A DNA stretch of 63,218 nucleotides, filler included, from Octopus bimaculoides (lineage: Eukaryota): assembly GCF_001194135.2 (NCBI RefSeq). It is 6 parts of 6 records of this genome, joined end to end, with 100 filler letters (N's around TTAATTAATTAA, not from the genome) between each part and the next. Parts side by side here need not be neighbours in the genome. Positions count along the whole stretch, not along the records: positions 1 to 20,180 come from NC_068989.1; 5 more parts are not named here. One strand, given 5' to 3'. Positions 1,001-15,387 of this stretch are shown here, one piece after another. The notes below the pieces were generated by a model. The model searched no databases, was not told where the DNA came from, and saw nothing but the letters and a program-made list of their open reading frames with translations. A program made the translations under genes and the position numbers. Numbering within the stretch: the first letter of the stretch is position 1; the number at the start of each line of letters is the position of its first letter.

Positions 1001-1052
1001 ACGCATTCTGTCCTCTGTGCTACCATTAAAGTTGCTCCAGATTCCTATGTCT
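1001..1052 (+). CDS. PHM-like exon A ([17 protein letters not shown], carries C81 equivalent)
   Basis: Acceptor tctctacctttttcag|, donor |gtaagt. Aligns to DTYFCMSMRLPVDEEAFV. T+AC with exon B gives Tyr. Confidence 0.8.
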
Positions 1053-1115
1053 GTAAGTATATTAATCTTTTTAAGAATCCCACAATAAATAATAGCTTGA
1101 GTGTCTCTGCGTTAG

Positions 1116-1192
<77 letters not shown>

Positions 1193-12047: not shown

Positions 12048-12138
<91 letters not shown>

Positions 12139-15100
12139 TGAACAGAAGAAGAATTGGATGAATTTTTTAAGATTTACGCTGAATTATTTTTCAGATGATG
12201 CGCTGCACACTCACCAACCCAACTGATCAAAAAGCCAATTTCGGGTATGTATTTGTTACTTATGTTAATGTTTGATTATCGTTTTTTTTTTTACTGTTTA
12301 ATTACTCAGTGTAAATACAGCAGGTCTGATGGTCTTGGTATTTACACATTCTAATGTGAGAGCATCGGTAAAATAGTTGTGTAAATGTTTTGGTGGTTGA
12401 CGGATGTCACTTTTTGAATGGGGAAATTATCAAAATAGATGCAAACCAAGCCAAGTCCTTTATAGCACATACTTCAATTCTGAATTGATACGTAGAGTAC
12501 ATGGAGTCATATTCATGTTTAACGAATATGTATTAGTTACATGTTGTTAACTACAAGGATTTTAGTAGGGTTCATAAACAACGAACAGCTAAGTTTCGTT
12601 TTTCATGTAAGAAACATCAGGAATCGTTACCTAGAGCTAAGTTTGCTTTCCTTTTATTTTTTTATTTATATTTACAGGGTATCCACAAAGTCTGGGTACA
12701 TTGAGTAAATAAAATCATAACATAAACAATTAAATATACGAAATAATAATTTCTTAAAGTATGTGTTAATCCCCATGTACCCAGACTTTGTGGACACCCT
12801 GTATAAAATAAATACCGGCCAAGTATCGACTTAAAATGTGGGAGAACACATTGCATAATGGAATCCCAGATATAAGATTGAAAATAAAAGGCAGAGTGGT
12901 CATGACTAGAATGTCTTTAATCTTTAATCATAGGTCTCGTAGATTAGATATGAACAAACTAATAGACAGCAGCAACAATATAGCAACCTATCTCAAGCTA
13001 ACGGAGAAGCTTCTATGTGGGTTGACAGAAATAACAGTTAACTCTACCTCAAATCACAACCTACAGACATGAAAAAAGGAGGACATACTGGATAGTGTAG
13101 TCGTCGATACACTATGTCAGGAAAAATATTGGTTGGTCACGACTGGAATTTCTTTAATCATAGCTCTTCATGAATGGAGCCGACGTATGGATAAACAGCA
13201 ACAATCAAATCCTGTCTTTGAGTAGACTTGAGTGATTTTCAAGTTGGTTTCATGCTTCACTAAGTTTTATATTTTCATTTCATGCTTTCGTGATATATAT
13301 GATATATATTTTTTTCCCGGTATTCAATGTTTTTCCTTGGAATATCCTTGTACATTTTTAATAGAATTAAGATCGTGTAATTTCGATAAAGCGAAATTTC
13401 AATGATTTTTGTATCAAAATATTTCATTACTTGATTTGGAATATAGCTGAAGCATTATCTTGTTGAAAGTCTGACGTGTTTTTATCTTTATCAAACACAG
13501 CTAGTTTTCCTTCATTTTATCGCAGATTCTAATGTAGCATTTTTATTTGTTCCATAATGGTCAAAGTAGAACTTAGTATTTATCTCATTGTTGTGTGTTT
13601 TTTCATACATGGATTCATCCCCAGAGAAAGTTTTACCTTCACTATTACTATTTTTCGACTGGTTTTGATTTTTGTCAGTTCAGGTCACAATTATTCAGCT
13701 ATAAATTTTTCTCAAAATCAGTATCTTTATCAGTTTTATTTTGTTTTTCTTTCGTTTATGTAATGGAGTGATACAGATTTTAAAGTTTTCTACAGCTTTT
13801 TTTCTTGCTATTTTTTATTTCCGTATCTGTTGTAAAAGTTTCTTTAACATCATGTTTTTTCTAGATTTTGTTTTGAATCAGATTATAGTTGAATTTTTTT
13901 TAAATTAACATTAAACACGTTTACTGAATTAGAATATTTTTTCATCCGGCGTCCTTCAATTTTCAATGAATTTATTCTGAAATACTTTCATTAGTTTTTG
14001 TAAATGTCTTCTGATTTTAGGCTTCTCTTTGATCTCATTAAAATGTTTTCCACGATGTTTTCCACGATAAATTGTAGCAAGGAAGTTTGAAATAGTTTTC
14101 TAATGTAATGACCATTTTTTTAATCAGAGCAAAGAGCAGCAGATTCGTCTTCTTTGGTCGAGTGTTTTAGTTCCCAAGTTAATTCTTTTGCTGCATGATG
14201 TCGATGGTCGGTTCAGTTATTTGATTTTACCTGTTGAAAAGCATCCATGAATTAGAGATCAATTCTATTGATTTGTTGATGAAATCGATGGGATCCTACA
14301 TCTAACACAATTAGCTATATTCGAACTACAGAACTATTATGGCTTTAAAATCATCGTTTCACTGTCAATGGAGATATATATTTGATTCAATCTAATTAAT
14401 TAGATGGTAAGAAATACAAACAGCTAGAAACTGAAAATGTGTTCAAGTGATAAATTATATTTTCATTAAATCCCCAATTATACGCTAGGGTCTTCTACTC
14501 TTGGGTTTTCTCCCTTTAATTTTTATTTATTTATTTATTTATTTATTTTTTAGTTTGTCGACGATATTTGTTTTGCATTCTATTGCTGAATATCCAAATA
14601 TTAAAATTATTGCAAATTAGTGTTTTTTGGTTGTTGCGTGTGTTGTTGGCACTCCGTCGCTTACGACGACGAGGGTTCCAGTTGATCCGATCAACGGAAC
14701 AGCCTGCTCATGAAATTAACGTGCAAGTGGCTGAGCACTCCACAGACACGTGTACCCTTAACGTAGTTCTCGGGGATATTCAGCGTGACACAGTGTGACA
14801 AGGGTGGCCCTTTGAAATACAGGTACAACAGAAAGAAGTAGTAAGAGTGAGAGAAAGTTGTGGTGAAAGAGTACGGCAGGGTTCGCCGCAATCCCCTGCC
14901 GGAGCCTCGTGGAGCTTCAGGTGTTTTCACTCAATAAACACTCACAACGCCCGGTCTAGGAATCGAAACCGCGAACCTATGACCGCGAGTCCGCTGCCCT
15001 AATCACTGGGCCATTGCGCCTCCACTGGTTGTTGCATGTAAACCATTGTTAAACTTCACTTCCCTTTGTGCACTCAGCATAGCCTGTACCTTTCAGTCCC

Positions 15101-15387
15101 TGGAAGGGAACGCTATCAGAAGAGATACATTTCTCATCATTTACTTTGTACCCTTTTTTTATATTTTTAGATACGAGCACACAGATCAAATGTGTAACTT
15201 AAACTTGTGGTTTGGAATACCAAAAGAATATGAAAATATATATAAACCGATTGTGTGTGGCAGAAATGCACAAAAGTTTAGTTTGGACGACTACGGCTAC
15301 ATCTTACCCAAAAATTCTAACAAGCCAGACATAGAAGGTTACAAGAAACTGATGTCGCAATTCAATTTGACAATGACGTCATATTAA
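1001..15387 (+). CDS. PHM-like: Divergent monofunctional PHM-like copper type II ascorbate-dependent monooxygenase; join(1001..1052,2502..2589,3447..3541,4038..4109,4650..4707,5545..5609,9323..9403,10301..10377,10503..10556,12195..12244,15171..15387); 5' end probably incomplete
   Basis: All 10 introns are GT..AG with matching phases. The total is 909 nt = 302 aa + TAA. Translation: [302 protein letters not shown]. It is collinear with PHM motifs (DFKP..TVHHM, YAWARNAPPTRLPKGVGF, VLQVH, FAYRVHTH, SGY, NPQLPQ, ARC, DEMCNL). There is no PAL domain and no TM helix. Confidence 0.92.
1116..1192. repeat. (GATA)n microsatellite; others at 2934-3001, 37295-37325, 58625-58658
   Basis: Direct tandem repeat. 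Confidence 0.95.
1985..2137. repeat. Compound (ATT)n/(ACT)n/(ATC)n microsatellite (LINE tail/target); related tracts at 2436-2498, 8335-8368, 9243-9301
   Basis: Direct tandem repeat. Confidence 0.95.
2138..2435 (-). mobile_element. 5'-truncated 3' end of Dong/R4-like RLE non-LTR retrotransposon
   Basis: Minus-strand ORF ends ...[10 protein letters not shown]...[21 protein letters not shown], then a short 3' UTR running into (TAA)n. Both ends abut ATT-type repeats. Approximate bounds. Confidence 0.8.
2502..2589 (+). CDS. PHM-like exon B ([30 protein letters not shown]; CuH motif region)
   Basis: ttatacag| ... |gtaagt; phase 1 to 2. Matches IDFKPRASMDTVHHMLLFGC...YW. Confidence 0.9.
3447..3541 (+). 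CDS. PHM-like exon C ([32 protein letters not shown])
   Basis: tgtttgcag| ... |gtatgc; phase 2 to 1. Matches WFCDEGTC..ILYAWARNAPPTRLPK. Confidence 0.92.
4038..4109 (+). CDS. PHM-like exon D ([24 protein letters not shown]; Q170/H172 equivalents)
   Basis: tttttgctttttcag| ... |gtaagt; phase 1 to 1. Matches GVGFRV...YFVLQVHY. Confidence 0.92.
4650..4707 (+). CDS. PHM-like exon E ([20 protein letters not shown])
   Basis: atcttatag| ... |gtaagt; phase 1 to 2. Matches KDCSGVSVHLTRVP. The alternative acceptor at 4671 runs into a stop. Confidence 0.85.
5545..5609 (+). CDS. PHM-like exon F ([22 protein letters not shown]; interdomain linker)
   Basis: ttttattattgcag| ... |gtaaga; phase 2 to 1. Matches QPLIAGMYLMMSVDTVIPPGEK. 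Confidence 0.88.
6831..7340. repeat. Head-to-head inverted pair of SINE family A 3' halves forming a ~510-bp palindrome
   Basis: 6831-~7087 is the reverse complement of ~7090-7340 with scattered mismatches, a small indel and essentially no spacer. Confidence 0.9.
7809..8333 (-). mobile_element. Internal reverse-transcriptase fragment of Dong/R4-like LINE (frameshifted)
   Basis: [58 protein letters not shown] motifs. Confidence 0.88.
8365..9242 (-). mobile_element. 5'-truncated 3' end of a second Dong/R4-like LINE with RLE endonuclease
   Basis: [45 protein letters not shown] [gap] ..[20 protein letters not shown], 3' UTR, (TAA)n tail. C-terminus and UTR differ from the 2138 copy. Confidence 0.9.
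9323..9403 (+). CDS. PHM-like exon G ([27 protein letters not shown]; CuM H242/H244)
   Basis: ttatttattttag| ... |gtaagt; phase 1 to 1. Matches NADISCQYKMYPMHVFAYRVHTHHLG. Confidence 0.93.
9851..10208 (+). mobile_element. tRNA-derived SINE, family A (near full length, 3' clipped)
   Basis: A-box-like TGGCCCAGTGG and B-box-like segment. Body is shared with copies at 6831-7340, 14641-15026 and 35495-35820. Confidence 0.85.
10301..10377 (+). CDS. PHM-like exon H ([26 protein letters not shown])
   Basis: tgtttctcgcag| ... |gtatgt; phase 1 to 0. Matches GKVVSGYRVRNGQWTLIGRQNPQLPQ. Confidence 0.92.
10503..10556 (+). CDS. PHM-like exon I ([18 protein letters not shown])
   Basis: tctattttactcatttttag| ... 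|gtatgt; 54 nt, phase 0 to 0. Fills the span corresponding to AFYPVEHPVDVTFGDIL. Confidence 0.85.
12049..12135. repeat. (AGT)n microsatellite; others at 24885-24910, 50138-50181
   Basis: Direct tandem repeat. Confidence 0.95.
12195..12244 (+). CDS. PHM-like exon J ([17 protein letters not shown]; C293)
   Basis: ttatttttcag| ... |gtatgt; phase 0 to 2. Matches AARCVFTGEGRTEATHIG. Confidence 0.9.
12673..12803. mobile_element. Tc1/mariner-type MITE with 29-bp TIRs and TA target duplication
   Basis: tacagggtatccacaaagtctgggtacat ... atgtacccagactttgtggacaccctgta (1 mismatch, including TA). Confidence 0.88.
14641..15026 (-). mobile_element. tRNA-derived SINE, family A (full length)
   Basis: Reverse complement of the 9851 copy, with (CAA)n-type tail and B box GGTTTCGATTCC. 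Confidence 0.88.
15171..15387 (+). CDS. PHM-like terminal exon K ([15 protein letters not shown]...IVCG...TSY*; CuM M314)
   Basis: cccttttttatatttttag|; phase 2. DQMCNL corresponds to DEMCNL. Same frame as ORF 15046..15387; stop TAA at 15385-15387. Confidence 0.92.

Follow-up and report, generated by a model that had tools for sequence, protein, structure and literature searches.

A probably secreted PHM-fold paralogue of Octopus bimaculoides with a reduced CuH site and without the peptide-carboxylate anchor

Can a protein with the fold of peptidylglycine alpha-hydroxylating monooxygenase (PHM) still serve as a copper protein when one of the six copper ligands and the residues that hold the peptide substrate are gone, or is the gene encoding it about to decay? 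This question is raised by a gene of Octopus bimaculoides (assembly GCF_001194135.2), present in a window of 63,218 nucleotides, filler included, in which six parts of the genome are joined. The part studied, positions 1-20180 (from NC_068989.1), is AT-rich, microsatellite-rich animal DNA with eight runs of N, and the gene was read on the plus strand between 1001 and 15387. Textbook examples of the non-coupled binuclear copper monooxygenases are PHM, DBH and related enzymes, and all six of their copper ligands are regarded as indispensable. A preliminary description, based on the DNA alone, had proposed an intact but rewired PHM paralogue, secreted and neofunctionalised, whose amidation-specific residues had been replaced together. 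The analysis given below points, with about even confidence on our side, to a functional, fast-evolving secreted copper protein which is not a peptidylglycine hydroxylase.

Exon location was guided by rat PHM and later by the true orthologues. Eleven exons join to an open frame of 909 nt, which encodes 302 amino acids (aa) and ends with a TAA stop codon at 15385-15387. All introns have the form GT...AG, nine of the ten donors start with GTAAG or GTATG, a pyrimidine tract precedes each acceptor, and the exon phases agree at all junctions. The orthologous locus of O. sinensis (L001 in CM016868.1, free of N) is collinear with positions 638-17624, introns included, and the exon lengths of 52, 88, 95, 72, 58, 65, 81, 77, 54, 50 and 217 nt are identical to those of its exons 2-12. 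Over these exons, the two genes share 86% aa and 93% nt identity. The orthologues of O. sinensis (P0148) and O. vulgaris are 82-86% identical to the O. bimaculoides protein, have the same exon lengths and collinear introns, and differ by ~7% neutral divergence and by the inclusion of a first exon; the stop codon and the C-terminal tail encoded in the last exon are identical in both. The eleven exons and the uninterrupted 302-aa product described before were thus confirmed. The gene as such is not new, as its orthologues are already deposited under the automatic name ‘peptidylglycine alpha-hydroxylating monooxygenase-like’ in RefSeq and ENA.

Single residues were compared in a MAFFT alignment of 117 PHM domains. 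The domains came from 137 relatives, which an exhaustive HMMER search had yielded, and from their cluster mates, together with rat PHM and the O. bimaculoides protein. The numbering of rat PHM was checked on PDB 5wm0, in which the query index plus 35 gives the PAM residue. Six changes against rat PHM (Y79V, H107R, M109I, R240G, E313Q and Y318N) were verified, and H108, Q170, H172, H242, H244, M314 and N316 are kept. Five of the six copper ligands are therefore retained: the CuM site is complete (H242, H244 and M314, which are H166, H168 and M238 of the 302-aa product), whereas the three histidines of CuH are reduced to R-H at 107-108 plus H172, and a full triad is likewise missing in all cephalopod members of the clade described below. 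The substrate-carboxylate anchor is also lacking, with G at 240 and N at 318; Y318 is a residue which we take, from PDB 1OPM, to be part of this anchor. R240 forms a salt bridge with the substrate carboxylate in PHM (PMC12164859). Since H107, R240 and Y318 are invariant or nearly so across ~100 canonical PHM domains, the protein is no canonical PHM, as had been stated. R107, G240, Q313 and N318 recur in the orthologues of O. sinensis and O. vulgaris. Eight cysteines, at positions 81, 114, 126, 131, 227, 293, 315 and 334, account for four of five disulfides known from PHM; Arg stands in place of C186, and the C47 region lies outside the part studied. Both these cysteines and the four N-glycosylation sequons (NMT, NST, NYS and NLT) had been listed before, and all are present. 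All eight cysteines, the five metal ligands and three of the four sequons are identical in O. sinensis, where NYS is NNS and still conforms to N-x-S. In 52 aligned family and canonical sequences, four ligands (H108, H242, H244, M314) do not vary, and H172 is conserved in ≥ 90%.

The 302 aa matched the Pfam domain Cu2_monoox_C (PF03712) with 49.3 bits (cutoff 23; E=4.8e-13). For Cu2_monooxygen (PF01082), no match at E ≤ 0.01 was obtained with the 5'-truncated 302 aa, and the full-length orthologue scored 32.1 against a cutoff of 30. A phmmer comparison with rat PHM in the PDB gave E ~1e-12. For the 86%-identical orthologue P0148, an AlphaFold2 model was computed (pLDDT 93.4, pTM 0.89); its top 29 Foldseek matches were all rat PHM (E 1e-21, TM-score 0.74-0.84, 22-25% identity), followed by DBH (4zel). 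As judged from this model, the O. bimaculoides protein is a PHM-fold paralogue with two predicted beta-sandwich domains, in agreement with the first assignment. Exon 1 of P0148 encodes the signal-peptide-like MSTIQLFVSFCVFVLSAG..., and the paralogues P0149, P0150 and P0002 have similar leaders. Because the orthologue possesses this N-terminal exon, the O. bimaculoides protein, too, is very probably secreted. A tblastn search with the PAL and transmembrane regions of three PAMs yielded no match in the part studied. With this result and the conserved stop codon at 15385-15387, the predicted product is not a bifunctional PAM, and the reported absence of a PAL domain and a transmembrane helix is upheld.

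To which family does the gene belong? In a neighbour-joining tree with bootstrap (200 replicates), the cephalopod sequences were grouped in 200/200 and a 12-member mollusc group, apart from canonical PAM/PHM, in 153/200 replicates. Members of this separate clade come from Octopus, Liolophura, Mizuhopecten, Tegillarca and Haliotis; the next branches are Mytilus and unionid sequences. After the octopus orthologues, the nearest relatives are the paralogues (46-50% identity), followed by short PHM-like proteins of chiton, scallop, ark clam and abalone (25-35%). The O. bimaculoides gene has the single PHM module of ~330 aa, the replaced R240 and the C-terminal extension typical of the clade, and the signal peptide was seen in orthologues and paralogues only. 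On sequence grounds, the gene is best placed in an unnamed, mollusc-wide clade of short, putatively secreted PHM-like proteins without PAL.

The cephalopod paralogues comprise P0150 of O. vulgaris (‘PAM B-like’), P0140 of O. bimaculoides (‘probable PHM 1’) and the transcript-derived P0149 and P0002. They resemble the O. bimaculoides protein in length (314-338 aa), signal peptide, R or N at 107, absence of R240, the RCTLTNP motif and the C-terminal tail, but most of them keep Y318 (P0150, P0140, P0149) and some keep E313. P0150 is located on the same O. vulgaris chromosome at a distance of ~51 Mb and is, hence, not a tandem copy. P0149 is carried by contigs of 1.3-1.4 kb from two SRA runs, which are intron-less and thus represent a spliced transcript. 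The other short mollusc proteins (Liolophura P0009, Mizuhopecten P0010, Tegillarca P0004 and P0141, Haliotis P0012; on the next branches Mytilus P0112 and unionid P0054) share a length of ~330-365 aa, the absence of PAL, a usually replaced R240 and the retention of CuM, H108 and H172. They differ in their lower identity and, in P0005, P0007, P0009 and P0010, in a full H107-H108 pair.

The distribution of the changes within the clade bears on their order. Of 12 tabulated clade members, 10 have G, S or A instead of R240, among them members with H107-H108; Haliotis alone retains R240. At 107, all cephalopod members have lost the histidine (R; N in the O. bimaculoides paralogue), as have Tegillarca (K) and Haliotis (L), and this loss is placed by the pattern in the cephalopod ancestor and, separately, in the ark clam and the abalone. 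Y318N and E313Q occur together solely in the orthologue group of O. bimaculoides, O. sinensis and O. vulgaris, where they arose. The rewiring thus appears stepwise and not concerted, and the proposal that the residues had been replaced together had to be abandoned.

PHM domains with degraded sites also occur outside cephalopods. One domain of a two-PHM protein (P0041_d1) has QQ at 107/108, FF at 242/244 and V at 314 and is fully dead; P0122 combines N107 with A240; and in the short forms of unionids (P0054) and Mytilus (P0112), position 240 is F or Q and position 318 is E or D. In the literature on cephalopods and shell matrix, no paper on this clade or its altered sites was found, only indirect leads: a protein with a Cu2_monooxygen domain is part of the shell matrix of the pearl oyster Pinctada (PMC4660305), and proteins with this domain are present in bivalve mantle transcriptomes (PMC11464482).

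How could such a protein work? It would be an N-glycosylated, signal-peptide-bearing protein of two beta-sandwiches and four disulfides, lacking PAL, membrane anchor and cytosolic tail. Its O2-activating CuM site is complete, and the electron-transfer site CuH is reduced to H108 and H172. Every cephalopod paralogue, at 46-50% identity and despite the ancestral loss of H107, has H108, H172, H242, H244 and M314; this long retention of five ligands argues that copper binding still matters. In rat PHM, the H107A variant still binds two Cu and is fully coupled, with an activity of at most ~5% (PMC12164859). Copper would still be bound at both sites, since H108, H172 and Q170 would otherwise have decayed after H107 was lost. 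A glycine-extended peptide could not dock in the manner of PHM with the anchor of R240 and Y318 gone; the protein, whether extracellular or resident in the secretory pathway, would therefore have another substrate or serve in copper redox chemistry or binding. It could be a monooxygenase that is slow or reduced in a different way, or else a copper protein with redox activity. Its amino acid sequence evolves fast, but reading frame, splice sites, cysteines and the metal ligands that remain are conserved. Judged by these residues, the protein would almost certainly do something other than amidate peptides. That it is a ‘neofunctionalised enzyme’, as the preliminary description proposed, is an inference.

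Whether the gene is functional at all has to be weighed against several results which speak for the opposite. In comparison to O. sinensis, 63 nt differences in 906 nt and 42 aa differences in 302 aa were found. The dN/dS ratio ranges from 0.69 (NG86) to 0.89 (maximum likelihood) at a dS of ~0.08-0.10 and is not distinguishable from 1, the divergence of exons (6.9%) is about that of introns (7.4%), and 63 random substitutions would cause 44.7 ± 3.4 replacements in simulations, compared to 42 observed (P=0.25); constraint at the level of substitutions is therefore weak and near-neutral on this branch. The protein collections searched contained no transcript of this orthologue group, and exon 1 of the O. 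bimaculoides gene itself was not found in the part studied. The residue at 107 varies by lineage (R, N, K, L), which in the alignment looks like simple loss and not like a designed replacement ligand, and replacing any one CuH histidine of rat PHM by Ala leaves an essentially inactive enzyme (PMC6123673; PMC12164859). The substitution rates, the missing transcript and the fact that Y318N and E313Q are private to the orthologue group are what a gene drifting to pseudogenisation would show, if it had been freed from selection recently and had acquired no disabling mutation yet. Such a drift is quite improbable in our view. Exons contain no indel in 909 nt, whereas 65 events were counted in 7435 aligned intron nt, so that 7.95 would be expected (P=3.5e-4). 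Stop codons are absent, and 63 random substitutions leave the frame free of stops in 11.5% of simulations (P=0.115 under neutrality). In all three octopus genomes, each intron is GT-AG and neither a stop nor a frameshift interrupts the frame; cysteines, metal ligands and three sequons are unchanged against O. sinensis, as stated above. Columns that do not vary among the cephalopod paralogues carry fewer replacements than the others (12/131 vs. 30/171, odds ratio 0.47, P=0.044), and O. vulgaris differs from O. sinensis by one nonsynonymous and four synonymous changes. The gene is not an obvious pseudogene, which agrees with the preliminary description. That text had also named a dN/dS near 1 as a sign against its reading; the estimates come close to this value, while the indel deficit, the missing stops and the spared conserved columns point the other way. 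The evidence for selection is mixed; taken together, it suggests a reading frame under selection with a surface that evolves quickly.

If the frame is maintained, the protein might be kept for binding only, i.e. as a catalytically dead pseudoenzyme of PHM fold which is secreted and buffers or transports copper via CuM or binds a ligand or matrix. In rat PHM, the single His-to-Ala mutants of the H-site have at most ~5% activity, two bound coppers and retained coupling (PMC12164859; PMC6123673). A loss of H107 alone would thus leave little catalysis, and the chemically arbitrary residue at 107, the missing R240/Y318 anchor and a dN/dS of 0.7-0.9, rapid amino acid evolution being common in binding proteins, fit the dead enzyme as well. 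We nevertheless consider it rather unlikely: H108, H172 and Q170, which serve electron transfer only in PHM, are kept in all cephalopod paralogues and would not be needed by a binder using CuM alone, and the clade members with an intact HH (P0005, P0007, P0009, P0010) suggest a catalytic function of the ancestral clade. An ordinary monofunctional PHM, amidating neuropeptides as the automatic names of orthologues and relatives imply, would be in line with the fold and the intact CuM site, but it is very improbable with three (nearly) invariant residues, H107, R240 and Y318, all replaced, a mutation of H107 alone removing ≥ 95% of activity, and a clade separate from canonical PAM/PHM. There is, finally, next to no likelihood that the gene is an artefact, i.e. 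open segments that line up by chance or an assembly error across gaps. The assembly is gappy, and a decoy segment at 10840-10899 preserves the frame, so frame-preserving decoys do exist in AT-rich introns; however, exon lengths and order are identical in two independent chromosome-level octopus genomes, with 93% nt identity and collinear introns.

The functional copper protein remains our preferred reading, and a wider one concerning the clade is put forward more tentatively, as a possibility that we regard as somewhat doubtful. It would consist of secreted PHM-fold copper proteins of molluscs in which R240 was lost and one CuH histidine disappeared on three or more independent occasions (in cephalopods, ark clam and abalone), with the five other ligands fixed; its members, if active, would be monooxygenases with a two-histidine site and a new substrate unrelated to amidation. 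In view of the Pinctada shell-matrix protein mentioned above, this substrate might be found in the modification of extracellular matrix or of secreted products. If this applies, the O. bimaculoides gene would be the fastest-evolving octopus member of the clade. A lineage which has been without H107 during divergence to 46-50% identity, and which has kept the other five ligands, is a natural experiment on a two-histidine H-site. For annotation, mollusc proteins automatically named ‘PHM-like’ should not be counted as capacity for neuropeptide amidation. The significance of these points is limited by the near-neutral substitution rates on this branch, and the claims are based on sequence and predicted structure.

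The individual exons, all on the plus strand, are numbered here after the O. sinensis gene. Exon 2 (1001-1052, equivalent to 11238-11289 of L001) is internal, with the phase-0 acceptor ctttttcag/ACG and the donor TCT/gtaagt, and encodes V at Y79 and the C81 equivalent. Exon 3 (2502-2589) has the same length as 13040-13127 of L001 and contains the C114 equivalent and R-H-I in place of H107-H108-M109, with the R codon at 2537-2539 and the H codon at 2540-2542. The equivalents of C126 and C131 are encoded in exon 4 (3447-3541), Q170 and H172 together with the sequon NMT in exon 5 (4038-4109). Exon 6 (4650-4707), which was located only by orthologue guidance, carries the sequon NST and R, without Cys, at the C186 position. 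The interdomain region and the beginning of the C-terminal domain are found in exon 7 (5545-5609). Exon 8 (9323-9403) encodes C227, the G replacing R240 (codon 9382-9384) and the CuM ligands H242 and H244; exon 9 (10301-10377) contains the sequon NYS, and exon 10 (10503-10556) is orthologous to 24451-24504 of L001. C293 and the RCTLTNP motif, which is common to all cephalopod paralogues, are located in exon 11 (12195-12244). Exon 12 (15171-15387) is the last coding exon and comprises Q for E313, M314 (15190-15192), C315, N316, N for Y318 (15202-15204), C334 and the sequon NLT, ending in ...QFNLTMTSY before the TAA at 15385-15387. The nearest AATAAA/ATTAAA hexamers are located ~0.5-0.7 kb downstream of this exon. 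A family tblastn on both strands of the part studied gave no further PHM-like coding sequence beyond the eleven exons.

Position 1001 is an internal phase-0 acceptor and not a start, and the 302 aa correspond to exons 2-12. In O. sinensis, where P0148 has 334 aa, exon 1 is MSTIQLFVSFCVFVLSAGEIQEITVPNDAWDG, situated ~1.1 kb upstream of exon 2 (the THSVLC exon); its 32 aa form a typical signal peptide and the first beta-strand. The region 1-1000 was searched for this exon without success and holds SINE-like and microsatellite sequence. As the orthologue has an additional 5' exon not found in 1-1000, the product is 5'-incomplete and the 302 aa are a truncated view of a protein of ~334 aa. An ATG at 938 was rejected as start, since the signal-peptide look-alike MRKRQKFSFCLMLLSVLYLFQ (938-1000) is the translated polypyrimidine tract of the acceptor and the orthologue uses a separate upstream exon. 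Look-alikes of this kind are a trap for gene predictors in AT-rich genomes.

Other candidates were discarded as well. Reading the exon at 1001 as the ‘SDTYFC’ region would require a missing exon in the gap 1245-1567, but the HMMER alignment and the orthologue show that exon 2 splices directly to exon 3. The segment 10840-10899, bounded by AG...GT, phase 0 on both sides and giving a 304-aa frame, was considered as exon 10 until the true orthologous exon was recognised at 10503-10556; it weakly resembles the PHM region whose place it takes. PHM-like fragments out of order (‘PISGMYLLL’ at 12217, 12513-12593 with a stop, 14349 and 12980-13060) had suggested a decayed duplicate and proved to be wrong-frame or chance matches, the family tblastn being empty outside the eleven exons. 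A protein search with a query of three exons (127 aa) gave no match; the orthologues surfaced only with the full model.

The model deposited for the O. vulgaris protein CAI9727953.1 (P0001, 304 aa; locus L003, OX597822.1, 61443838-61484495 reversed) is wrong in two places. The N-terminal MLFLDKFFSSFLK seems to be a translation of the pyrimidine tract that precedes exon 2, and exons 10-11 are replaced by the wrong-frame ORF (open reading frame) CKYSRFDGLSIYTFECESIGKMVV. The O. bimaculoides counterpart of the CKYSRFDGLSIYTFECESIGKMVV stretch (12300-12351) carries a stop (YTF*). When the O. vulgaris locus was re-read with the exon structure of O. sinensis, an intact frame of 12 exons and 334 aa was obtained. 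A corrected gene model is hereby supplied.

Five runs of N fall within the gene (1245-1567, 4855-5213, 8678-8929, 10629-10638 and 11507-11955); all are intronic, and none touches an exon. As the O. sinensis locus has no gaps and is collinear, with exons of equal length, no exon is hidden in the gaps, and order and orientation of the contigs are right. Two gap sizes are estimated too small: the 359 N of 4855-5213 stand for ~1.85 kb of O. sinensis intron, and the interval 1243-1983 (741 nt), which includes the 323 N of 1245-1567, matches ~1.05 kb. Microsatellites are located near exons at 1117-1190, 1980-2140, 10385-10460, 10580-10700 and 12040-12140 and are the likely cause of assembly breaks. 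A (CAT)n repeat begins 8 nt past the donor of exon 9, the 10-N gap following exon 10 is flanked by (CT)n, and other introns contain (GATA)n and trinucleotide runs rich in AT.

The intron 5610-9322 contains ORF fragments of a non-LTR (long terminal repeat) retrotransposon on the minus strand, at 7812-8180 and 8663-9313, broken by the gap 8678-8929. The former gave a weak RVT_1 match (E=1.5e-5, 25.2 bits, below the cutoff of 29.6) and the latter no Pfam match. Collinearity with the O. sinensis intron is lost over most of 7811-9280, where only 8286-8358 aligns, so that the fragments are probably a lineage-specific insertion. An interspersed repeat of ~260-360 bp is present in four copies, 89-92% identical, in three introns: 6830-7092, 7092-7341, 9850-10208 (minus strand) and 14641-15026 (plus strand). 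The first two are inverted and form a head-to-head palindrome with its centre at 7092. SINE-like repeats were seen at ~300-640, 16127-16306 and 17258-17450. The latter two share 73% identity and have further matches at other points of the O. sinensis locus, and the copy at ~300-640 sits where collinearity with O. sinensis ends upstream of exon 2.

Among known systems, the PHM core of rat and human (PAM residues ~45-356; PDB 1PHM, 1OPM, 1SDW) is the closest. Shared with it are the two-domain beta-sandwich, as predicted for the orthologue with a TM-score of 0.74-0.84, the residues H242/H244/M314, H108/H172, Q170 and N316, and four of five disulfides. The differences are an identity of only ~23-24%, the residues Val79, Arg107, Ile109, Gly240, Gln313 and Asn318, the missing C47-C186 disulfide and PAL/transmembrane/cytosolic region, and the C-terminal tail specific to the clade. 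In the structural comparison, PHM is followed by DBH (4zel), and in sequence the octopus protein is closer to PHM. A DOMON domain and the complete set of three CuH histidines are found in DBH, MOXD1 and tyramine beta-hydroxylase, whereas the octopus protein has neither a DOMON domain nor a full CuH triad. These enzymes act on non-peptide substrates, i.e. the fold can change its substrate.

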